This document shows positions 2,328 through 59,220 of a DNA stretch of 64,000 bases, one piece after another. The position numbers were made by a program, and so were the translations under genes. The notes below the pieces were generated by a model. The model saw only the letters and a list, made by a program, of their open reading frames with translations. It did no database searches and was not told the origin of the DNA. Numbering within the stretch: position 1 is the first letter of the stretch; each line of letters begins with the position of its first letter. The stretch is from positions 310,001 through 374,000 of the IMG/VR virus record IMGVR_UViG_3300009545_000018. One strand, written 5' to 3'.

Positions 2328-3329
2328 ATGAAGAAAAATAAACTATTATCCATTTTGACACCTGAACAACTAATTGAAGAATTTAAAAATTTAGGAACCG
2401 TTCCTAAAATCGCTAAAAAATATAATATTAATACTCAAACAGTTTATACTGCTTTCAAGTTAATAAATTATGATTGTAAAGTTAGGCAAGATGTCGCTTC
2501 TCTTGTTAGTAAAGAAATTTTACAAGAATCTTACAATAGATTAAAATCTTTAAAAGCAGTGGGGCGTGAATTAAATATTACATCTGATAGTATCAAAGAC
2601 TACATGGATAAGTTTGGATTAGAATATAAAAAACAAGTAATCTATAATTGTAATCATAGTTTTTTCTCTTCGCAAACAGAAGAATCATTTTATGTGGCTG
2701 GATTTTTAGCGGCTGATGGATGTGTTAAAAATAGAAAAAGTCCAAGTCAAAAATATGGTTCTACTCGGCATGAAGTATATATTGGCTTATCAAAAAATGA
2801 CAAAGAACATTTGTTAAAAATAAAAAAACTGATTGCGGCGGAAACTCCAATTAGAGATTATTTGGTAAAGAATTCTAAAAGAAATCCTAATTGGAATGAT
2901 AGTTGGAAAAGTGAGATTTCAATAACATCTAAAGAAATGTTTGATGACCTAGCAAAATTTAACATAGTCCCACGTAAAAGTCTCATTTATACTATGCCTG
3001 ATTGGATGAAAGATCATCCTTTAAAACATCATTTTCTTAGAGGATATCATGATGGTGATGGTAGCGTTTATAAATCATTAAGTAAAGGAAAAATAGTAGA
3101 ACAATTATGTTTTTCTTTAAGAGGAACACAAGAATTTCTATTAATAGTGCGCGATATACTAGAGAAGGAGTGTGACTTAGATCATCGAAACACTCCAATT
3201 AGAATCTCTAGTGGACATGGTGTTTTAGAATATGGAGGCAATGGAATTGTAAAGAAGATTTGTGATTATCTCTATAGAGATGCTAGTGTTTATTTAGAAA
3301 GAAAATTTAATATTGTAAATGAAGTATGA
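2328..3329 (+). CDS. Free-standing LAGLIDADG homing endonuclease with N-terminal HTH repeats
   Basis: Two LAGLIDADG helices (FYVAGFLAADGCV, HFLRGYHDGDGSV) and C-terminal IYLERK-like motif (VYLERK). Confidence 0.92.
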   Translation: MKKNKLLSILTPEQLIEEFKNLGTVPKIAKKYNINTQTVYTAFKLINYDCKVRQDVASLVSKEILQESYNRLKSLKAVGRELNITSDSIKDYMDKFGLEYKKQVIYNCNHSFFSSQTEESFYVAGFLAADGCVKNRKSPSQKYGSTRHEVYIGLSKNDKEHLLKIKKLIAAETPIRDYLVKNSKRNPNWNDSWKSEISITSKEMFDDLAKFNIVPRKSLIYTMPDWMKDHPLKHHFLRGYHDGDGSVYKSLSKGKIVEQLCFSLRGTQEFLLIVRDILEKECDLDHRNTPIRISSGHGVLEYGGNGIVKKICDYLYRDASVYLERKFNIVNEV

Positions 3330-4041
3330 TGCTATAATTGATAAATATAAAAAATGTTTACTATGTAATAAGAAAACAAAATTTAGTTTTAGAATAAAAG
3401 GATATTCTAAAAATAATACTTATCGTGGAAGTATAAGATATGATTCTGTAAATGATAATTTAAAATACTTACAACTAAGTCCAGAACACAATAAAAAATA
3501 TAAATTAGTAAAAAAATTACTAAATTTGCATATTTTCAATCCTACCGATTATTATAATAATAAAATTTCTGAGAAAAATTTTCACATTGAACAATATAAA
3601 CTATTTATACATTGTCCAACGCATTCACATATAAAAAATGTAAACTACTATCCAGTTTATAATGAAAGTCATTTTTATGTAAATTTAGATGCGCAAACAT
3701 ATGATGGTGTATTTGAATATGAAAGCAAAGAAATAAATTATGTTTTTGTTGATAAAACAGCCGGTCCATATCCATGGATTAAATACGATTATGAGAATGA
3801 ATTATTAACTATGAATAATGATTATAGTTTGTGGGGTAAAATAAATATTAAATTAGAAGATGGTTACTTTAATACTTTAAATGTTAAAACTATAATGAAA
3901 GATCTTATAAAAATTGAGAAAATTGATAATTCAAATTATGCCGCTTCAGAAGAAGGAAGGGAGGCTATATTCAAATATATAATTGGACAATATAATTATA
4001 AAAATCTTAAATCAGCTTTTAAGCTAAAAATATTCAAATAA
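3319..4041 (+). CDS. Hypothetical protein with C-terminal KLKxF tail (ends FKLKIFK)
   Basis: 240 aa ORF, N-terminal CxxC; C-terminus matches the motif of the adjacent minus-strand array. Confidence 0.6.
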   Translation: MKYDAIIDKYKKCLLCNKKTKFSFRIKGYSKNNTYRGSIRYDSVNDNLKYLQLSPEHNKKYKLVKKLLNLHIFNPTDYYNNKISEKNFHIEQYKLFIHCPTHSHIKNVNYYPVYNESHFYVNLDAQTYDGVFEYESKEINYVFVDKTAGPYPWIKYDYENELLTMNNDYSLWGKINIKLEDGYFNTLNVKTIMKDLIKIEKIDNSNYAASEEGREAIFKYIIGQYNYKNLKSAFKLKIFK

Positions 4042-4372
4042 ACAATTTCAATTTACAAAGTTTTTCTACCTTACTTGGATTGTCTTTTATCCAATCGACA
4101 ATTTTATCTAAAGCCACATTATCCACCAGTTTAAGATCATCTTCATTATAATAGAAAATTAAGCATTCATTATACATTGCGGTATCTGTTTCAAAATCAA
4201 AATAATAATACGTACAATAAATAGGTAATGAGTGAACTGTATTTAAATTTGACTGAATATGCTTATTGTCATCTATTACTAATTTTAATTTTAAAATTAA
4301 GTCTATTATAGAATAAACTCTAAGGTCTGTTGAAATAATAAGTTTTGATCTTGTAGGAATAATATTACTCAT
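4034..4372 (-). CDS. Hypothetical protein, KLKxF-tail array 1 (ends WIKDNPSKVEKLCKLKLFI)
   Basis: Coupled by ATGA overlap to the upstream array gene; shared C-terminal motif. Confidence 0.7.
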   Translation of the reverse strand: MSNIIPTRSKLIISTDLRVYSIIDLILKLKLVIDDNKHIQSNLNTVHSLPIYCTYYYFDFETDTAMYNECLIFYYNEDDLKLVDNVALDKIVDWIKDNPSKVEKLCKLKLFI

Positions 4373-4638
4373 ATAAATGATTTTAAATTTAAATATCTTT
4401 GAATTTCTTTTTCTAGTTCTGAGTTTTTTGTTTTATGATTAAGCCAAGCCAAAAATTCTTTATAGCCATCATAAGGGAAATGATCTTCAATTTCATTAAT
4501 ATAATTGATAGGTATAATCCACATTTCATATTTATTTGAATAGATAAATTCTTTATGATTCATAGCATATACTGTTGAATTATGAGTTAAAGTATTATTT
4601 CTAATATCAGATAATATCTGAGCTAATTTAAAATTCAT
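4369..4638 (-). CDS. Hypothetical protein, KLKxF-tail array 1 (ends RYLNLKSFI)
   Basis: Start directly abuts the upstream stop; shared C-terminal motif. Confidence 0.7.
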   Translation of the reverse strand: MNFKLAQILSDIRNNTLTHNSTVYAMNHKEFIYSNKYEMWIIPINYINEIEDHFPYDGYKEFLAWLNHKTKNSELEKEIQRYLNLKSFI

Positions 4639-4980
4639 TTAACAAAATACCTTTAATTTCATTATTCTTTCAAATTCATAAAAATTTTCTTTTATCCAAA
4701 TTGTTAAATCATATGCTGCCCAAGAATCAAATGGTTTTAAATAAGGAATATCTTCGGCACGTTTTTCTTCAAAAGCAATAATTTTGTTATTTATTTTATA
4801 AAGAAAAACACCTGTAAGTTCTTTGTCATGAATAAAATAAAATTCATTAATTAGATAATCTGAAAGATTTCCGGTATTTAATTCTTTTTTTAAGAAGAAG
4901 AAAAATTCTGAAATTTTTTCCAATAATAAAACATCTTTAATAACTTTTTCTTTATTTGTTTCAACAATTATTGTTTTCAT
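4639..4980 (-). CDS. Hypothetical protein, KLKxF-tail array 1 (ends WIKENFYEFERIMKLKVFC)
   Basis: ATGA overlap; shared C-terminal motif. Confidence 0.7.
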   Translation of the reverse strand: MKTIIVETNKEKVIKDVLLLEKISEFFFFLKKELNTGNLSDYLINEFYFIHDKELTGVFLYKINNKIIAFEEKRAEDIPYLKPFDSWAAYDLTIWIKENFYEFERIMKLKVFC

Positions 4981-5267
4981 AAAAATGCTTTTAATTTATT
5001 TGTGGAATCTATTTCTTTTGAATGTAGTTTAATCCAATTAATTAAATTTTCTGCCGAAAAAGATATTTCAAAATGATTTGGCATATGATTTGGATCACAA
5101 AATGGATCTAAATGATAAATAATTTTGGAATCAAAACATTTATATCTAAATAAATGTTTCTTGCGATATTTTGGATAAAAAGAGATATGGTAATTATTAT
5201 CAATATCTGATTTTATATCATTAATAAATACCCATAAATCTTTATAGTATTTGGTTTGGTATTTCAT
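4977..5267 (-). CDS. Hypothetical protein, KLKxF-tail array 1 (ends WIKLHSKEIDSTNKLKAFL)
   Basis: ATGA overlap; shared C-terminal motif. Confidence 0.7.
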   Translation of the reverse strand: MKYQTKYYKDLWVFINDIKSDIDNNYHISFYPKYRKKHLFRYKCFDSKIIYHLDPFCDPNHMPNHFEISFSAENLINWIKLHSKEIDSTNKLKAFL

Positions 5268-5557
5268 GTAAAGGCTTTTAATTTTTCAAATCTTGACAAG
5301 GTATCATGGTTATTTTTGACATATAAGTCTAATTCAATAACATCATCTAACGAAATTATTGGTAATTTAGGAAGATTAAAATTAGTAATTCTGGCAACTA
5401 TATAAAAGCCTGCAGCATCCACATACCTTACTGATGCCGCGTCTGGATTATGAGATACCGCGCTCCAATAGCAATTGACTGAAATATTATGATCTAGTCT
5501 TTCTTTTATTTGAAGTAAAAGACTTAATGTATCAGTAATTATATCTTCTTTATACAT
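5264..5557 (-). CDS. Hypothetical protein, KLKxF-tail array 1 (ends RFEKLKAFT)
   Basis: First gene of the array, 6 nt after the 2H-ParB gene; shared C-terminal motif. Confidence 0.7.
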   Translation of the reverse strand: MYKEDIITDTLSLLLQIKERLDHNISVNCYWSAVSHNPDAASVRYVDAAGFYIVARITNFNLPKLPIISLDDVIELDLYVKNNHDTLSRFEKLKAFT

Positions 5558-5563
5558 AAAATA

Positions 5564-6592
5564 TTATCGATCTTTTTGTCGACGCTCATGAGTTGGTGTT
5601 AAGTAACCATCAGGATCGATAAATGCTAATTTATAAAACATATTAATTTTATCAAATAATGATAATTTTGTTTGATGTGGAGGGGTTTTAACCCAATCAT
5701 TTACTAATGCAGGCACATGAGTATAACCTAATTCTTTAGAAGCTGCTATACGATGAATTCCGTCTATAATGACGAATTTGCCGCCACCATCACGATGTGC
5801 AATTCTTATAGGATCTAGTGTTACTCCATCTTTCATTTTTTGTAACACTACATCATATTTTTCTTTACTCCAAATAGGCTTATCTTCAATGACAGAAATA
5901 GGTATTATATCAAAATAGTATAATCCCCATCCACCATATTGATTATATTCTTCTTGAAGAGCATCATCATCACCATTAAACATTTCTAAAAATCTTTTAA
6001 CAGCCAAATCATCATATTTATAGTGACTTACTTGAGCGGTTTTATAGTAGGATTCAATTTTTGATATTAATTCAGCACGTTTTTCTGGTTTTTTTAATTG
6101 AAAATTGACGAATAAACGACTATCACCATAATCGCCGCCCCATAAAACTATATCTTGAACAGTAAATGTTATGGGATCTATCTTAAATTTTTTAAATTTT
6201 TCTAGCTCTTTATCATAAGCTAGTGTAACATGTGGATTAAAATCTTTAAAATTTTTTTTATAATCAATTTTTTCTTCATCAAATTTTGCTTTGAGCTTAT
6301 CAGAAAGTTTATGAATATCATCACTTTCAACACGAGCAATAATAGGTAAAGGATTATCTTTATATTTAGGAAAGCTATCTACACAATTAATTGTAATAGT
6401 AAATGGCTCTTCTTTATTGACTACTTCATAAGTAGCTTCTAAAGCTTTAGAGACTTCAGTGATTGGCCAATTATCATCAAAACAAAGGATAGTAATATGG
6501 TATTCTGAAGGCGATTCTTTCACCCCAGGTACATCAATTTCCATTAACATTCTCCCCACCTCAGGGGCTATTCTGACACCAAGAAAAGCCAT
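5564..6592 (-). CDS. 2H phosphoesterase (2'-5' RNA ligase-like) fused to a ParB/sulfiredoxin-like domain
   Basis: Paired HxT motifs YHITI and PHVTL in the N-terminal half; IIDGIHRIAA (DGxHR) with upstream LDPIRI and downstream VPALV typical of ParB/Srx domains. Confidence 0.82.
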   Translation of the reverse strand: MAFLGVRIAPEVGRMLMEIDVPGVKESPSEYHITILCFDDNWPITEVSKALEATYEVVNKEEPFTITINCVDSFPKYKDNPLPIIARVESDDIHKLSDKLKAKFDEEKIDYKKNFKDFNPHVTLAYDKELEKFKKFKIDPITFTVQDIVLWGGDYGDSRLFVNFQLKKPEKRAELISKIESYYKTAQVSHYKYDDLAVKRFLEMFNGDDDALQEEYNQYGGWGLYYFDIIPISVIEDKPIWSKEKYDVVLQKMKDGVTLDPIRIAHRDGGGKFVIIDGIHRIAASKELGYTHVPALVNDWVKTPPHQTKLSLFDKINMFYKLAFIDPDGYLTPTHERRQKDR

Positions 6593-6691
6593 AATTTATC
6601 CTTGTTTTTAAATTAATTCTTTTCATTAATATGTCAAGTTATGCGGAGTATTTTTAAATAATAAAAATATTACATAAAATAACATTGTTGT

Positions 6692-7228
6692 ATGGATAAA
6701 CTTGTTTCAGAAGCAAAAAAAGATACATCTTTAACAATGGCTCAAATTAAAAAGCTGCCATTTAAATCTCTTAATCGAATGATTAAAAAAATGAGAGACT
6801 ATCTTAAAAAAGATAAAACAGTGATTGAAATGTTTAAAAAATATGATGTTGATATTGAGGAAATAGATTTAATACCAATGAAATTTGGAAAATTAGATGT
6901 TTCTGCAAAAACAGATCATGGTGTTATTATTTTTAACTATAATTTATTAACAGATGGTGATTTTTTTAAAGATTTTTCTTATGGTGTACATGAGATGACC
7001 CATTGGTTGCAGCAAACTGCCAGGAAAACTGCTACTACTAGTTCTGATGATGGTGATTACTTACATAATAAATTTGAACAAGAAGGCTTTCAAAATCAGG
7101 TGGAATATATAGCTAACCAATTTGGCGATAATGAAGCGGAAAATTATGTAGATGATTTATTAGATCATCATGATAAAAAGGGTAAAGAAAAGAAAGAATT
7201 AGAAGACATTTTATTATCTAAAGTATAA
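6692..7228 (+). CDS. Putative zincin-like metallopeptidase
   Basis: VHEMTHWLQQ (HExxH) with a downstream Glu (FEQEGF) as a likely third ligand. Confidence 0.6.
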   Translation: MDKLVSEAKKDTSLTMAQIKKLPFKSLNRMIKKMRDYLKKDKTVIEMFKKYDVDIEEIDLIPMKFGKLDVSAKTDHGVIIFNYNLLTDGDFFKDFSYGVHEMTHWLQQTARKTATTSSDDGDYLHNKFEQEGFQNQVEYIANQFGDNEAENYVDDLLDHHDKKGKEKKELEDILLSKV

Positions 7229-7279
7229 TATTACCAGTTAAAATTATAAATTATTGAGCTAATAAACTAGAATAACAGT

Positions 7280-8917
7280 ATGGTTTTTTACTTAAATCCA
7301 GTTAGAGCCGGCTTAGATGCTGTTAGAAGTTTAGGTGATGGTACAACTTTCAATTTGAAATGGTATCAGGCATATCCTTCTAATAAATCTAATGGTATTG
7401 CTTATCATATTTATTATTCTATAAATAAAGAGGATGTTTTTACTGAAGGAGTTAAATATATTTCTATAGATGGCTCTTTAGAGGCTAACATAATTGATTT
7501 AGTACCGGGGCAATTATATTTTTTCTCTGTTAGACCTGTGGAATACATTCCACAAACCATGAATAATAGTCAGGGTATTGTTTTAATTAATAATAATGAT
7601 ATTGTATTAATAATTGATGATATTGATTCTCAATTACCAATTGCTTACGATAATTTGCGCGTTTATCCTACTAGCATTTTAAGATCAAATATTACTGATA
7701 CTGATTTAATTATTCCTTTAGCTGATGTAGAAAATTTTCCTAACATAGGAATAGTAAAAATTGGAATTGAATTAGTTCAATATTCTAGTGTTGATAGAGT
7801 AAATAAAAATTTAGTTTTAACTGATTTAGATCAAAGAGGTTATGATAATACTCATGCTTATATTCATAATACAGATGGTTATGATGGGTATAATGTATGG
7901 TCACCATATATTAGTTTATTTATTTCTGGAGAAAGTACAACTTTTGATAGAATATTTATGAGTCAATCAAGATTTGAATATCCAAATTTTGCTTATACTA
8001 CAGTAGATGGTTATCGACAAGTTACAAAAGATAATTTAAATACAGATTTATCTGCTAGTGATTCTGCTAATGTAACTTTTCCAACTTATGATTATGCGGG
8101 TTATCATAGAACAGATCCTGTTCAATTGTTAAATGGTACATGTGTTGGTAGTTATATTGGTGGAGAAATGGGATGTATAGATGGTTATGGTAATATTAAT
8201 TTATTACGTGGATTATCTTTGCAAGATCAGAATAACCAAAGACAAGAAGTACTATTAACAGTAACTGGTCGTCCAGCTGTATTAATTAAAAGAGTACATA
8301 CTGGCATACATTGCTCATGTTATTTAGCATCTAGTGAATATCAAGATGATAGATGTCCTTTATGTTATGGTACAAAATTTGTATTTGGATATGAACAATA
8401 CTTTAATCCAAGAAGATCTGATGGAAGAATATTGGTAAGAACTAGTCCCGCTGATGATAGTGTAAAAATGTATGAAGCCGGTTTGGAATCTGAATTAAAC
8501 TTAGATTTATGGACCTTAACAGTTCCGACTATTCATCAAAGAGATATAGTTGTTTTATTTGATGTTGATGATAATGAAGAATTTAGATATGAAGTAGGTT
8601 CTGTGACCAGAAATAATACTATTATTGGTATGGAAGGTGGTCAGAAATTTAAAGGTATGAGAATTAGAAAAACTGATCCTGCATATCAGATAAGAATTTT
8701 TAGAAATACCGCTATGTTTCCATCAAAATTAACTACAACTATTGGGTTTAGTAGTGGTATTCCTCCCCATACTCATGAAATTGTTATAAATGAGGGAATT
8801 TTAAGTACCAATCAAATAAATCAAACCACTAATGTTGTTCAGGGTCATTCACACCCCATAATTTCAGGTGAAGTAATGGAAGTACTTGGACATAAACATA
8901 ATATTATTCTGGCTTAA
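7280..8917 (+). CDS. Putative head-closure/neck protein with FN3-like N-terminus, Cys motif and His-rich tail
   Basis: N-terminal LKW...YHIYYS...IIDLVPGQLYFFSVRP (fibronectin III pattern); HCSC...RCPLCYGT as seen in large-myovirus head-completion proteins; three HxH motifs at the C-terminus. Confidence 0.55.
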   Translation: MVFYLNPVRAGLDAVRSLGDGTTFNLKWYQAYPSNKSNGIAYHIYYSINKEDVFTEGVKYISIDGSLEANIIDLVPGQLYFFSVRPVEYIPQTMNNSQGIVLINNNDIVLIIDDIDSQLPIAYDNLRVYPTSILRSNITDTDLIIPLADVENFPNIGIVKIGIELVQYSSVDRVNKNLVLTDLDQRGYDNTHAYIHNTDGYDGYNVWSPYISLFISGESTTFDRIFMSQSRFEYPNFAYTTVDGYRQVTKDNLNTDLSASDSANVTFPTYDYAGYHRTDPVQLLNGTCVGSYIGGEMGCIDGYGNINLLRGLSLQDQNNQRQEVLLTVTGRPAVLIKRVHTGIHCSCYLASSEYQDDRCPLCYGTKFVFGYEQYFNPRRSDGRILVRTSPADDSVKMYEAGLESELNLDLWTLTVPTIHQRDIVVLFDVDDNEEFRYEVGSVTRNNTIIGMEGGQKFKGMRIRKTDPAYQIRIFRNTAMFPSKLTTTIGFSSGIPPHTHEIVINEGILSTNQINQTTNVVQGHSHPIISGEVMEVLGHKHNIILA

Positions 8918-10632: not shown

Positions 10633-11376
10633 ATGAGTAATGTTACAAAAATTTTTTATGTTTATTGTTTCCAAAATAAAATAAATAATAAAATGTATAT
10701 TGGTAAAACATCTAATATAGAAAAAAGAAAAAAAGAACATGCTTTAGCAAATGGTGATTGTCCATTATTTCATAACGCTATAAAAAAATATGGAATTGAT
10801 AATTTTAATTTTTTAATTTTATCAGAGCATAATACAGAAAAAGAGGCTTTAGAGTTTGAAATTAAATATATAAAAGAATATAAAACAAATGTTGATAAAT
10901 TTGGTGATAAATTTGGTTACAATTTGACTGATGGTGGAGATGGTGTTTCTGGACATAAACATTTACCAGAAACTATAGATAAAATATCTAAGTCACTCAA
11001 AGGAAGACCAGGAACTAATAAAGGTAAAATATTTAGTGATGATGTTAAATTAAAATTATCTGAAAGTCACATGGGGCAAATAGGTTATTGGAAAGATAAA
11101 GAATTTTCAGAACAACATAAAAAAAACCTTTCTGATTCACATATGGGTCATCCTGGATTTTGGTTGAATAAAAAAAGATCTCCAGAAACTATAGAAAAAA
11201 TTAGAAAATCTAATTCTGGTAAAATAAAACCAAAAATTTTATCCGAGGATAGTATAAAAGAAATTATAAAACTATATAATAGTAATAATTATACTTATAA
11301 TCAACTGGCAATAAAATTTAATGTTGGAAAAACCACCATTTTTAGAATAGTCAAGAATGGAAACAAAAATGAGTAA
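10633..11376 (+). CDS. Free-standing GIY-YIG homing endonuclease with NUMOD3 repeats and C-terminal HTH
   Basis: FYVYCFQNKINNKMYIGKT, GYNLTDGGDG, repeated HLPETIDKIS / SPETIEKIR and LSESHMG / LSDSHMG motifs. Confidence 0.92.
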   Translation: MSNVTKIFYVYCFQNKINNKMYIGKTSNIEKRKKEHALANGDCPLFHNAIKKYGIDNFNFLILSEHNTEKEALEFEIKYIKEYKTNVDKFGDKFGYNLTDGGDGVSGHKHLPETIDKISKSLKGRPGTNKGKIFSDDVKLKLSESHMGQIGYWKDKEFSEQHKKNLSDSHMGHPGFWLNKKRSPETIEKIRKSNSGKIKPKILSEDSIKEIIKLYNSNNYTYNQLAIKFNVGKTTIFRIVKNGNKNE

Positions 11377-21548: not shown

Positions 21549-22247
21549 ATGGCTTTTGCAGCAAATACACAGTCTACTTTAACATTACCAAATGGTGTTA
21601 ATAAGACCAGTACAGCCGTATCAACAAACATAATCATTTTGGTCAATAATACACCAGTCGGTGCAGTTCAATCGTTAGCAATTAGCGAAAAAAGATCAAT
21701 AAAGATGATTGATGAGGTAGGAAATGACGGTCATGTTGATTCAGTGCCAAATCAATCTACAAATATTACTGGCACTTGTCAAAGAGTTAGATTTGATAGA
21801 CTAAGAATTACTGAAGCCTTTAGTAGAGGCTTTTTACATGCTCATGCACAAGTATATCCTTTTGATATCGTTATTTTAGATAAACAAAAGAGAGATACTG
21901 GCAGCCAAATTTCTACAGTAATTAAAAATGTTTGGATTTCCGGACTAGATTATACTTACTCTGCTACGGATTGGGTTATTACAGATGGTATGCAATGGGA
22001 AGCTGAATCAATCTTTAGCATACTAAATGGCGGCTCTTCTCCAATTCCTGGTGGAGTTCCAGCAGCCGTTGGTGGAGAAAGAGGCATTAAGCATATGGGT
22101 GCGGGTCCAAATGGTATTGTTACTATTCAGAGTGGTGACGGTCTCGTTAACATAGAACAACTTGCTGACACCGGGTCTGGTGGTAGACGTGGGTCTCTCG
22201 ATGCTGCTGGTTTGATCGATATTGGTAGTGCGGGCGATCTTTTTTGA
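21549..22247 (+). CDS. Tail tube protein
   Basis: GGAG RBS; follows the sheath gene; VGAVQSLAISEKR...ITGTCQRVRFD...PFDIVILD pattern of tube proteins. Confidence 0.8.
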   Translation: MAFAANTQSTLTLPNGVNKTSTAVSTNIIILVNNTPVGAVQSLAISEKRSIKMIDEVGNDGHVDSVPNQSTNITGTCQRVRFDRLRITEAFSRGFLHAHAQVYPFDIVILDKQKRDTGSQISTVIKNVWISGLDYTYSATDWVITDGMQWEAESIFSILNGGSSPIPGGVPAAVGGERGIKHMGAGPNGIVTIQSGDGLVNIEQLADTGSGGRRGSLDAAGLIDIGSAGDLF

Positions 22248-43277: not shown

Positions 43278-46200
43278 TGGGTAACCTTAGAATACAAAAT
43301 GTAGAAGTAATAGACGTTTCTAATATTAAAGTAGTATTTACCGAAGATTTAAATACTAATTTAGTAATTGAAAACATTTCTATCATATCTGATACTAATA
43401 ATGTTCCAAATGCAGAAGTATTAAGTTTGAAAATTAAAGGAAATACTTTAACATTTAAATGTTTGCCTTTAAGCCCTTTAGCATCATATTTTTTAACATT
43501 TCAATCTATTAATTTACATCCATTTACTTCCTTGCATGGAGATTATAGATTAGCTGAAGATGGTATTACAAATAAATATTTAATTATAGCTCCATTATCT
43601 CCAGACAATCCCGTTCAAAATTATTTTGGTTCTTTTTATAAAGATAATATTTATAATATAGATGATGATACTACTTTAGTTGGAAAATATATTCAATCAT
43701 TATCTGTAATTTTATCTAGAGCTTTATATGATATTAGACAAGTTAAAAACGAAAATTATTTGTCTTTTGATGTAATTGATGAAAAAAAAGTTCGTGGAGC
43801 AGGACCTTTTGATCGACTTGATGAAGAGGGGGCTTATGAAATTGTACGTTTAGGACGAGCCCCAAGCTCTAACAAGGGAGCTGCTAAGTTTCAATATGAT
43901 GAATTTCCACGATTTCCTATTACTTTACAAAAAAATGTGGCAAATGAAAACATTTTACCAAATTCAACCAATGATATTGGTATTTTTAATGTTAATACTT
44001 TAATATTAAATCTTGGCTCTTTTCCCATTACTAAAGTTACAAGTATTGTATTTTTACAAAGTACATCAACTCCAAAGATCATATATGATATTTCTTCATT
44101 AGGATATCAAATAAAAGACTCTCGTTATGATCAAGATTATGCTTTTAGTTATGCTACATTAGAAGATAATCAAATTAAACTTAATGATAAAATTCTTGAA
44201 AATTCTAATTTTTCTTTAGATTCTATTATTAGAGTAGAAGTTATTTATGAATATAAAAATTTGGGTGTTGTTGTTGATCCAAATAGTGTTAAAGTAACTA
44301 CAATATTTGATGTGATTAGAGAAGAATTGCCTCCAATTATTAATATTTTTAATTTAAAAAACTCTCCAATTGTAGATTCTAATGGAGATATTTCTGGATT
44401 GGGAGGCGTTACATTTACTGATCCAAATAATAATATTATAAATTCCTTACATCCTGCATTTAAAAAAGAAATTGTATTTAGATTAAATGGTTTGCCATCT
44501 TTGCCTGGACAATATGCTATTGATTATGAAACCGGAACAGTTTATGTATATGGTGAAGATTTAAATAATAATGGAACTGGACCATATCCACCGCTGGCTA
44601 CATATAAATACAAATACACTTTTAAATCTGATCAAGATTATACTTATGATTCTAGTTTGTTTGATTTAGTTGCTCTTCCTTTAGGAAATTTAATAAATGA
44701 GGATGGGACTATTGTTTTTAATTATGAAGAAGTTTTGATTCCAGGATTAGATTATAATGCGGCTTTACATCAAGAAGAACTTTCTGAAAGAATAGAAAAT
44801 AGGTTAGTGGCATTAAATGCCTTTAGAACAATTCATTCTCCTATCACTAATGTATTTAGAATTTTTAATGAAACATCAGGAGAAATATATACTCTTAGTA
44901 GATGGAATGATGATAAAATATATTTTAGATATAATAATCCTCCTAAAGTAATTTCTCAAATTGGTGAACGGTCTTCATTTGCATCTCAAATAAATGAAAT
45001 GTTATTTGCAAATACAGTACTACAAAATGCATTGCCATTAAGAATATTTAAAATATTTTTAAATAACAATACAATTATCTCTTCAACTGAAGATAGTGTT
45101 GGTTCATCATTTAATTCTAGTGTTACTTTTACTAATGGTAATATATTTATAATTGAACGATGGTTTGATAAAGATGCTACTGAATCAGTAAATATTAATA
45201 GACTAACAAATATAGGAGATTATGTTATAGATTATATTAATGGTATAGTTTATATTGCTGTAAGTAGTACTCAAGATTTTAATTTAGGAAGTATTAGTTA
45301 TAAATATAATAGTATTAAACCCACTTATCCACATGTAATTAGTGTTGAAGATATTTATTATCGTTTTAGTTCATTAGTACCTAAAAATAAAAATTTTAAG
45401 TATACTTCATTTGATGATGGTAGTATAGTTCCAGAAAACATTGACAGTGCGGATGAATTATATTTAAATGAAAATTCATCTGCGCCTTATCAAATTTACA
45501 ATAATTCTGTGGGCATTTTTTTCAATTCTTCTTTTGTGCCAGGAGTTACTAATCAAGTAAAATTTGTACGTAGTATTTTTGAGCACAATGATCTATTAAA
45601 TAATACTAATCCTATTAATTTTGCTAATTATAGCGTATCTAATGGATTTAATATTACTGTGGGAGAAATTAATAAACAAGTATTTGATACTGTTAAATAT
45701 GATGGATATAATTATTACGTTAATGTTAATGAAAATATTCCATATTTATCTCCAAATATTAATTTTTATTTTAATGTTACTAGAGCTTCTGATGGTCAAA
45801 ATTTGTGGGATAATGCTGGAATAATAGAAGAGGGAAATATATTAAAGCTTATTTTGTCAGGAGTAAATTCACCATCTATTGGTGATTTAGTTACAATTAA
45901 TTATATTTTCTCAATAAATAATTTGTCTAGAATTGTCATAGATTATAATAAAGGCGATTTATTTGTAGATTATACTTATGTGGCAGATGAAATTATTGTT
46001 AGTTATGAATATGGTGATAATATTATTGATTTTAGATCTAGCAAATCTCTTTCGGCAAATACCGAATATTATGCCAGTTATAAAGTAGGTGCTTTAAGAG
46101 ATGCTCTATTAAAAAACTTTGGAACTTTAGTTAATATTCCAGAATTAACTAATTTTGATGTTGATTTTAATAGAGAAAGATATCGTGATTCTTTAATGGC

Positions 46201-58257: not shown

Positions 58258-58604
58258 TATTAACGGTAAAAACCAATAATCATACTTTTGTTTTCTCTAA
58301 ATGGATGAAATTCAGAACAAAACATGATTTTAAAAACTCTTATCCAGATTATATTAGATTGAGCGATGATTTTCCTTACTGGGATGTTGAAATAGGATTT
58401 AAATTAATTAGTTCAGAAATAGAGTGGCAACACAACCAGAGTACTGGCATTTGGGAAGCATTCTCTACTCCAGAATTTTACCATGTAATAAAGATTTATA
58501 AAAATCTTTATGGCAGTAAGGTATCATATGATGATATCGAAGCTGCTAAATCAAAAATGGATGAGTTATTAATTAAATATGATAAATTGGGGTGTTTTTT
58601 ATGA
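58254..58604 (+). CDS. Hypothetical protein, KLKxF-tail array 2 (ends DELLIKYDKLGCFL)
   Basis: ATGA overlap; N-terminal FVFSKW motif. Confidence 0.7.
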   Translation: MILTVKTNNHTFVFSKWMKFRTKHDFKNSYPDYIRLSDDFPYWDVEIGFKLISSEIEWQHNQSTGIWEAFSTPEFYHVIKIYKNLYGSKVSYDDIEAAKSKMDELLIKYDKLGCFL

Positions 58605-58918
58605 TTTTTTATTATAAAGAAAAAGAATATTGTTTAACAGATTGGACAATATCTCATCAAGGTTACCATTATTGGCGCAGGTTAGTTATGTCTGATGGAA
58701 AACCCTCCACTTATGATTTTATTGGTTATAGAATTTGGAAAGATAAAGAATATACTTTAGCATCTAGTGGTTTATTTGTAGAAATTCATAAGTTATATAT
58801 TATGTATGATAATACTGCTGGAAAACCTGTAAGAATTGATGATAACACCTTATATCCTTTTAAAGAAAAATTAGATGATTTCTTATTACGAGTTAATAAA
58901 CTAAAGGTGTTTATATGA
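58601..58918 (+). CDS. Hypothetical protein, KLKxF-tail array 2 (ends DDFLLRVNKLKVFI)
   Basis: Start taken at the ATGA overlap; N-terminal YCLTDW motif. Confidence 0.7.
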   Translation: MIFYYKEKEYCLTDWTISHQGYHYWRRLVMSDGKPSTYDFIGYRIWKDKEYTLASSGLFVEIHKLYIMYDNTAGKPVRIDDNTLYPFKEKLDDFLLRVNKLKVFI

Positions 58919-59220
58919 GTATAATCATTGCAAATATAACAATTGGTGATTGGGAAGGCTTTGGTTCAGATGGTTATATTTGGAATTTTTGGAGATTCTC
59001 TTCTGGTAGTTTAGGAATTGGTTTATTAGTTGATAATTCAGATTGGTTTAAATTACAGCCCAATACCGCTACTTGGTCATTGATTTTTCATTCACCATTA
59101 TATTTTTTACAAGATCACTTTAAAGATATTGACTTCGTGAAATATTCAGAATTAGAGTTAACAAAAAAAGAAATAGATTTAAGGCTTGATAAAATTTCAA
59201 AACTTAAAAGTTTTTTATGA
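58915..59220 (+). CDS. Hypothetical protein, KLKxF-tail array 2 (ends RLDKISKLKSFL)
   Basis: ATGA overlap; N-terminal ITIGDW motif. Confidence 0.7.
   Translation: MSIIIANITIGDWEGFGSDGYIWNFWRFSSGSLGIGLLVDNSDWFKLQPNTATWSLIFHSPLYFLQDHFKDIDFVKYSELELTKKEIDLRLDKISKLKSFL

Follow-up and report, generated by a model that had tools for sequence, protein, structure and literature searches.

The window analyzed here is a stretch of 64,000 nucleotides (nt) covering bases 310,001-374,000 of the 447,763-bp virus record IMGVR_UViG_3300009545_000018 from IMG/VR. The record was judged complete, its GC content is ~30%, and the sole sequencing run containing the stretch is a rhizosphere metagenome. On the minus strand of the window lies a gene for a protein of 342 amino acids (aa) that a first-pass annotation had described as a 2H phosphoesterase fused to a ParB/Srx domain. 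The fusion is real: both HxT motifs of the 2H enzyme are intact, the two folds are recovered, and the arrangement recurs in clusters of orthologues. Among the products of the surrounding plus-strand genes are a homologue of the tail sheath and a protein resembling tape measures, and the locus therefore belongs to the tail block of a jumbo myovirus. The gene is laid out as follows, in window coordinates:

5564-6592, minus strand: whole gene, 342 aa, comprising the 2H phosphoesterase, the ParB/Srx module and the ancestral tail.
6599-6637, minus strand: upstream signals, with a putative -35-like TTGACA at 6632-6637 and an AAGGA Shine-Dalgarno sequence at 6599-6603.
6089-6592, minus strand: 2H phosphoesterase domain, LigT/ThpR-like, aa 1-168 (Pfam PF13563, AlphaFold AF2 model, Foldseek/VIA).
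6491-6499, minus strand: HxT motif 1, H32-I-T34, with H32 invariant in homologues.
6224-6232, minus strand: HxT motif 2, H121-V-T123, with H121 and T123 invariant in homologues.
6032-6088, minus strand: head helix of the ParB module, aa 169-187, containing peptide copy 1, KIESYYKTA, at 6035-6061.
5678-6031, minus strand: ParB/Srx-fold core, aa 188-305, from profile matches and predicted structure.
5750-5764, minus strand: D277-G-I-H-R281 motif, the Srx/SerK/SbnI-type counterpart of the ParB GERR phosphate-binding motif.
5564-5677, minus strand: ancestral 2H tail and stop codon, aa 306-342 (37 aa), containing peptide copy 2, KINMFYKLA, at 5624-5650, followed by YLTPxxERR.

Translation begins at an ATG at 6592-6590, 6 nt from the Shine-Dalgarno sequence, and this start codon call is correct because the N-terminal MAFLG is unchanged across 28 aligned homologues. 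No alternative genetic code is needed. The TTGACA promoter is putative, as a promoter scan called no full sigma-70 site upstream of the gene and no good -10. The same 340-344-aa architecture is found in five further clusters of full-length orthologues that are 68-83% identical to the protein and come from independent samples (JGI, ENA and Logan assemblies). Fused architectures are nevertheless rare, amounting to ~15 clusters among billions of proteins. A tblastn search of the 342-aa protein against 50,697 cultured-phage records (INPHARED) gave no match, and there is therefore no cultured phage relative to anchor the function of the 2H-ParB protein.

The N-terminal domain scores 45 bits against the Pfam model 2_5_RNA_ligase2 (PF13563; cut-off 27), and LigT_PEase and AKAP7_NLS also exceed their cut-offs. 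Both HxT histidines and T123 are invariant across the 28 homologues, and an AF2 model built on them reaches a predicted local distance difference test score (pLDDT) of ~90 over aa 1-165, with the bilobed fold expected of a 2H enzyme. The first-pass annotation had proposed a structural comparison with Acb1 and LigT; this comparison bears out the 2H fold and places the domain closest to LigT-type enzymes, with the affinity to Acb1 not upheld. The best Foldseek and VIA matches are drCPDase, TT0787 and LigT, and Acb1 ranks under LigT, Usb1, AKAP18, VP3 and ns2 in fold similarity. The core is of LigT size (~168 aa), while the matched solved Acb1 chains have 137-140 residues, and the Pfam Acb1 model (PF23474) reaches 20.4 bits (E value 4e-4), under its gathering cut-off of 27. 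The best NCBIfam match is TIGR02258, RNA 2',3'-cyclic phosphodiesterase, at 41.5 bits, below the equivalog cut-off of 65.7. Judging from the Pfam scores, the HxT motifs, the AF2 model and the sub-threshold Acb1 score, the domain is a full-size LigT/ThpR-like 2H enzyme with intact catalytic motifs and not a member of the Acb1 family. LigT/ThpR is its nearest family by fold only: the phage protein is just 13-22% identical to E. coli LigT (5ldm), D. radiodurans CPDase (5h7e) and T. thermophilus TT0787 (1iuh), and it differs from them in being phage-encoded, in falling under the TIGR02258 equivalog cut-off, and in carrying a conserved helix-YLTPxxERR tail and a ParB/Srx module.

Membership of the second module in the ParB/Srx superfamily is marginal at the sequence level and clear at the fold level. 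Pfam ParB_N gives 18.2 bits, under its gathering cut-off of 26.3, while PHROG ParB-like families match the module at E 2e-5. A profile of 19 fused modules retrieved SbnI, Noc, SerK and ParB from the PDB at E 4e-5 to 5e-3, with D-G-I-H-R aligned to IDGVHR of SbnI and to GERR of Noc. This motif, which contains the Gly-x-x-Arg phosphate-binding signature of the superfamily, is invariant in the 19 fused modules; among 109 relatives its G and R are invariant and its D and H at least 90% conserved. A second model, covering aa 165-342 and built on the 109 relatives, has a pLDDT of 86-98 over aa 165-305, with the head helix (aa 169-187) at ~86. A word-based search with the ParB module alone returned nothing; an exhaustive profile search yielded 447 representative clusters, 127 of them at E ≤1e-10.

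The features of a canonical ParB partition protein are missing from this module. It is a bare core of ~135 aa in which Pfam detects no helix-turn-helix (HTH) or dimerization domain, and no parA lies next to the gene. It thus shares the N-terminal nucleotide-binding fold of the CTP-dependent DNA clamps ParB, Noc and KorB, Noc being among its best sequence matches, but lacks their HTH, dimerization domain and neighboring ParA and has HR where they have ERR. The H-R type of motif is held in common with SerK, SbnI and sulfiredoxin, the ATP-type branch of the superfamily. Unlike SerK and SbnI, the phage module has no C-terminal domain of their kind and scores 29 bits where the equivalog cut-off is 380; it also differs from SerK, SbnI and sulfiredoxin in its fusion to a 2H enzyme, in its HYxxD motif and in an additional helix at the N terminus. 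We infer that the module binds a nucleoside triphosphate (NTP), and more probably ATP than CTP, because its motif is the HR of Srx, SerK and SbnI and not the ERR of CTP clamps.

The first-pass annotation had also noticed that two similar peptides bracket the ParB domain, and had suggested either an insertion with duplication or a repeated processing or targeting signal. The peptides are there, KIESYYKTA at aa 178-186 and KINMFYKLA at aa 315-323, on either side of the module. A search for KIxx[FY]YKxA in six frames of the 447,763-bp genome found two occurrences, both in the 2H open reading frame (ORF), against a shuffle expectation of 0.0, and this speaks against a genome-wide processing or targeting signal in this phage. 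The insertion idea is essentially right. We collected ~90 clusters of stand-alone, 205-aa 2H homologues that are 50-83% identical over the 2H part, and all of them have a conserved C terminus in which an L-F-D-K-I-N-M-F-Y-K-L-A-type helix precedes YLTPxxERR. From copy 2 to its end, the 2H-ParB protein has this native tail, with a sequence almost identical to that of P0012, a close solo homologue; the tail (aa 306-342) is modeled at low confidence, with a pLDDT from below 50 to ~60. Copy 1, in turn, has its counterpart at the N terminus of the stand-alone ParB-like proteins closest to the module (120-150 aa), where a helix of the same type is followed 3-4 residues on by HYxxD, just as copy 1 precedes HYKYD in the 2H-ParB protein.

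A position-specific scoring matrix (PSSM) built from the 2H tails and compared with shuffled sequences gave +25 for the protein's own tail (copy 2), +10.6 for copy 1, and +10.7 and +5.9 for the heads of the ParB-like proteins P0132 and P0115; 7 of 30 ParB heads scored above the shuffled 95th percentile. More distant, high-GC ParB relatives have a generic amphipathic helix only, and the shared 2H-tail/ParB-head helix is itself moderately amphipathic (~90th-95th percentile). The first residues of the head helix (PEKRAEL) continue the homology to solo 2H proteins, and the remainder matches the N termini of ParB proteins. On the simplest reading of these alignments, a ParB cassette with its head helix would have been inserted in frame by a crossover inside the similar tail helix; two similar peptides then bracket the module because its own N-terminal helix resembles the 2H tail helix. 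As it stands, the compact module is in frame within the disordered C-terminal tail of the 2H enzyme.

Proteins that begin with the 2H-tail helix also occur in the same island of relatives, at L138:8790-9485 (+), L141:7080-7409 (+) and L019:6639-7022 (+). Among them are a J-domain protein whose N terminus, LFDKINLFFKLAS, is nearly equal to the tail helix, an uncharacterized protein of 127 aa, and a mini ParB/Srx protein of 109 aa that has the motif DGRHR. The J-domain protein bearing the helix has a single close relative and remains an anecdote. The tail helix may be a portable peptide common to unrelated accessory proteins.

Two further fused architectures exist beside that of our gene: 2H-tail-ParB (P0013-15 and P0114) and 2H-tail-ParB-ParB (P0007-11, ~470 aa). 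On a quick, unrooted maximum-likelihood tree of 90 2H domains, fused forms appear in about five places and the starred branches force at least three changes, so that by this phylogeny the ParB module was gained or lost on at least three occasions. Two solo proteins, P0012 and P0016, are nested within the clade of our protein. A repeat-flanked insert could be lost precisely through recombination between the two helices, and this would explain the nested solo proteins. That 2H and ParB were joined more than once argues for a joint function of the two modules. An obligatory partnership between solo 2H enzymes and the ParB module was considered and rejected, as only 1 of ~19 large solo-2H relatives has a strong module match elsewhere. 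In that relative (G013, the contig of L046) a stand-alone ParB-module gene at 21926-22207 (E 7e-23) lies ~9.5 kb from the 2H gene.

We further investigated the genomic setting of the gene. The order p299, 2H, p178, p545 is kept in 28 loci from IMG/VR, in all of which the 2H gene lies alone on the opposite strand, with the conserved 299-aa gene convergent to it and the conserved p178-p545-p401 block divergent from it. Further loci were collected through the 299-aa gene. In the 39 that show both flanks, the 2H gene is full-length in 22, truncated to an 80-aa remnant in 4 and missing from 13, and in some of the loci without it the two flanking genes abut. Five large relatives that lack the gene at this locus have no 2H gene anywhere, and three of these are at least 97% complete. 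The 2H gene as a core gene of the clade is thus rejected, given that it is missing or truncated at many loci and absent from these five relatives. Elsewhere in relatives the island contains LAGLIDADG endonucleases, a glycosyltransferase, a J-domain protein, the 109-aa mini ParB/Srx protein and uncharacterized small ORFs. In this group of uncultured jumbo myoviruses, two conserved genes of the tail module enclose a variable accessory island, and the 2H gene is dispensable cargo. For such a gene in such an island, a conflict-related role therefore fits better than housekeeping, in agreement with the anti-defense type of role that the first-pass annotation had put forward.

In L118-L121, at ~7133-8196 (-), the 80-aa N-terminal 2H remnant stands directly after a 273-aa LAGLIDADG-type ORF and appears to be a copy of the gene that has decayed in place. 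Homing endonuclease ORFs of LAGLIDADG and GIY-YIG type, recognized by reading translations, flank the locus in the window as well (2328-3329 and 10633-11376, both on the plus strand), and relatives carry such genes at the same places. The divergent neighbor p178 (window 6692-7228, plus strand) has an HExxH motif at aa 100-104 and Glu129 in 28 of 28 orthologues. This conservation suggests that p178 is probably a small zinc metallopeptidase; it had no Pfam or PHROG match, and an Atlas search gave weak leads to the M78 and SprT-like families.

Downstream, the 2H gene is followed by an array of small ORFs that belong to a family with a common C terminus, KLKxF, whose members in the window are:

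4034-5557, minus strand: five small ORFs (97, 96, 113, 89 and 112 aa), all with [K/N]-L-K-x-F-x at the C terminus.
3319-4041, plus strand: KLKxF-family member.
58601-59220, plus strand: KLKxF-family member.

From the 2H gene through the five ORFs the gaps are 6, -4, -4, 0 and -4 nt, and a terminator scan found no terminator-like site between these genes. The first-pass annotation had placed the gene at the head of a coupled run with the array and read the array proteins as possible host-takeover effectors. With this tight, co-directional packing, a co-transcribed run is plausible; the functional hint drawn from the array is weak, and the linkage is not conserved. What comes after the 2H gene differs among relatives: the next structural gene may adjoin it directly, the number of unrelated small ORFs may be 0, 1, 3 or 8, or there may be a homing endonuclease. 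Only two of the five array ORFs have orthologues, and these occur only in the closest relative, L016, in another order. The array is lineage-specific cargo and not a conserved operon, and its linkage to the 2H gene therefore says little about either partner.

Across the genome, 48 ORFs of 74-240 aa end in [K/N/R]-L-K-x-F-x-stop, accounting for 48 of the 54 occurrences of the motif, and they form a large paralogous family of small proteins. Several members share a longer C-terminal block, e.g., QEEFEKLLKLKAFW, which is also present in the related phages L018, L025 and L028. A DNA-level palindrome or signal was rejected, as synonymous codons vary as in the background, and the constraint on KLKxF is therefore on the protein. 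A MinD-like amphipathic membrane helix was not supported either (mean hydrophobic moment 0.24, against 0.30 for other C termini).

The ParB/Srx module also links the protein to larger phage effectors. ParB/Srx and 2H domains both recur in phage polyvalent proteins, early-acting and often packaged effectors encoded near virion genes (Iyer, Burroughs, Anand, de Souza and Aravind, 2017; PMC5512222). Relatives of our module are built into such giants, including a Mu-portal fusion (P0131), a protein with LPD22 and ART-PolyVal (P0202) and a four-copy protein with a SprT-like domain (P0196), and its structure matches in BFVD include tail-lysozyme and acetyltransferase giants. Our gene likewise combines ParB/Srx and 2H, two effector-type domains, in a tail-gene block. 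It differs from polyvalent proteins in having two domains only, with no MuF, portal or peptidase domain, and the ddrB-ParB model PF18763 matched nothing in the genome, even with the E limit set at 10. Phage 2H domains unlinked to RNA ligases have been proposed to be degraders of defense nucleotides or RNases (PMC5512222), and viral 2H phosphodiesterases show diverse, narrow messenger specificities that follow structure groups (Doherty et al., preprint, 10.1101/2025.08.21.671373). We found no description of a 2H-ParB/Srx fusion in the literature searched: the 13 multidomain viral 2H cases of Doherty et al. are not described as ParB fusions (10.1101/2025.08.21.671373), and the text and available supplements of a 2025 ParB-fold survey mention no 2H partner (PMC12704722).

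We tentatively favor the view that the protein is an accessory counter-defense phosphodiesterase with an NTP-binding ParB module, acting on messengers in preference to RNA ends. As a countermeasure to host immunity, the 2H domain would cut a phosphodiester of the 2',3'-cyclic, 2'-5' or 3'-5' kind, either within a small nucleotide or at the end of an RNA. Degradation of an oligonucleotide or cyclic-nucleotide messenger is somewhat more likely than RNA-end healing. The ParB/Srx module could gate the phosphodiesterase or add a second nucleotide-directed activity. The protein may act very early, possibly as virion cargo, because relatives of its module are built into polyvalent proteins. It would share this accessory anti-immunity logic with other viral 2H phosphodiesterases that have the same catalytic motifs, namely phage Acb1 (T4 gp57B and FBB1 Acb1, 7t26), rotavirus VP3, mouse hepatitis virus (MHV) ns2 and BCSR5 PDE-9 (9q2g).

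Several points weigh against this proposal. The closest structural neighbors of the 2H domain are cellular RNA 2',3'-cyclic phosphodiesterases and not Acb1, and the genome has an RNA-repair kit of its own, which favors RNA healing. Because viral 2H specificity varies by structure group, the substrate cannot be called from the fold, and some of these groups cleaved 0 of 18 messengers (10.1101/2025.08.21.671373). NTP binding by the ParB module is predicted from motif and fold; the AF2 model of the full protein has a predicted template modeling score (pTM) of 0.51, so that its inter-domain geometry is not confident; packaging into the virion is purely extrapolated from relatives; and no RNA run is among the sequencing runs containing this DNA, which bears on expression timing.

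RNA-end healing is the first alternative. Host anticodon nucleases or toxin RNases leave ends with a 2',3'-cyclic phosphate, which the 2H domain would open; the ParB/Srx module, which shares its fold with the phosphotransferases SerK, SbnI and sulfiredoxin, would contribute a step that depends on NTP, for instance 5'-phosphorylation; and the products would feed the phage RNA ligases, much like the kinase-CPDase half of fungal and plant tRNA ligase. The best NCBIfam match of the domain is the RNA 2',3'-cyclic phosphodiesterase model, the PDB entries closest in sequence to the ParB module are the kinases SbnI and SerK, and the genome has genes for two Pnkp-like kinase-phosphatases, for three proteins of RNA-ligase families and for an NAD-dependent DNA ligase:

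194030-197160, 44083-45183, 140845-141471, 201065-201712 and 161373-163241 of the record: RNA-repair and ligase genes (Pnkp DxDGT motifs found by eye).

None of these genes is near the 2H gene, however; the ligase and Pnkp genes are ~115 kb away, and in relatives the 2H gene never adjoins a ligase. The phage Pnkp homologues already give kinase and phosphatase, and the genome has no Tpt1 to take off a junction 2'-phosphate and no RtcB. The TIGR02258 score falls short of its equivalog cut-off, and most relatives carry the 2H enzyme without a ParB module, some without any 2H. We thus consider RNA-end healing rather unlikely. A strict Acb1-type role against cyclic oligonucleotide-based antiphage signaling systems (CBASS), in which the 2H domain hydrolyzes 3'3'-cGAMP and related signals while the ParB module sequesters or hydrolyzes a second messenger, is in line with the dual anti-defense enzyme suggested by the first-pass annotation and agrees with the accessory distribution of the gene, with the weak Pfam Acb1 match and with weak precomputed Acb1 matches in many homologues. 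It is distinctly unlikely given the sub-threshold score, the low rank of Acb1 in fold similarity and the LigT-type core, and no messenger role for the ParB/Srx fold was found in the literature searched. Still less probable is that the ParB module acts on DNA, as a nicking nuclease, NTPase or clamp directed against the DNA of the host or of rivals, or serving to mark that of the phage, with the 2H domain as an unrelated passenger. Relatives of the module bear the PHROG label "ParB-like partition nuclease," and phage ParB domains have been argued to be NTP-regulated DNases (Iyer et al., PMC5512222), but the bare Srx-like core without HTH or dimerization domain, the HR motif in place of the ERR of clamp-forming CTPases, and the repeated joining of the same module to the same 2H family, which points to a coupled function, make this very doubtful. 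That the fusion is an artefact, either an assembly chimera or a frameshift joining two genes, has next to no chance of being true: the frame is open with conserved residues throughout, there are two other fused architectures, and the independent clusters with the same architecture refute it.

A more elaborate reading is a long shot. The protein would inactivate its target in two steps, "cut and modify": after the 2H domain has opened a phosphodiester of a defense messenger or RNA end, the ParB/Srx module would use NTP to act on the product, so that the cut could not be reversed. The L-F-D-K-I-N-x-F-Y-K-L-A helix, which is C-terminal in 2H enzymes and N-terminal in ParB-like proteins, the J-domain protein and other small island proteins, would serve as a portable tag by which different accessory effectors dock to one common partner, e.g., a virion or early-infection hub, and would perhaps be processed by the HExxH protein p178.

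A picture is emerging in which viral 2H phosphodiesterases regulate nucleotide-based immunity broadly and the ParB/Srx fold serves as an NTP switch of many uses. If the function proves to be ordinary RNA-end trimming, the protein would be a modest addition to known domain architectures. The natural and recurrent fusion of 2H and ParB/Srx suggests that phosphodiester cleavage is coupled to NTP binding, a combination described by neither field, and the solo, single-ParB and double-ParB versions of one enzyme family constitute a ready experimental system. Altogether, the locus shows an accessory island in the tail module of jumbo phages that swaps counter-defense-like cargo.

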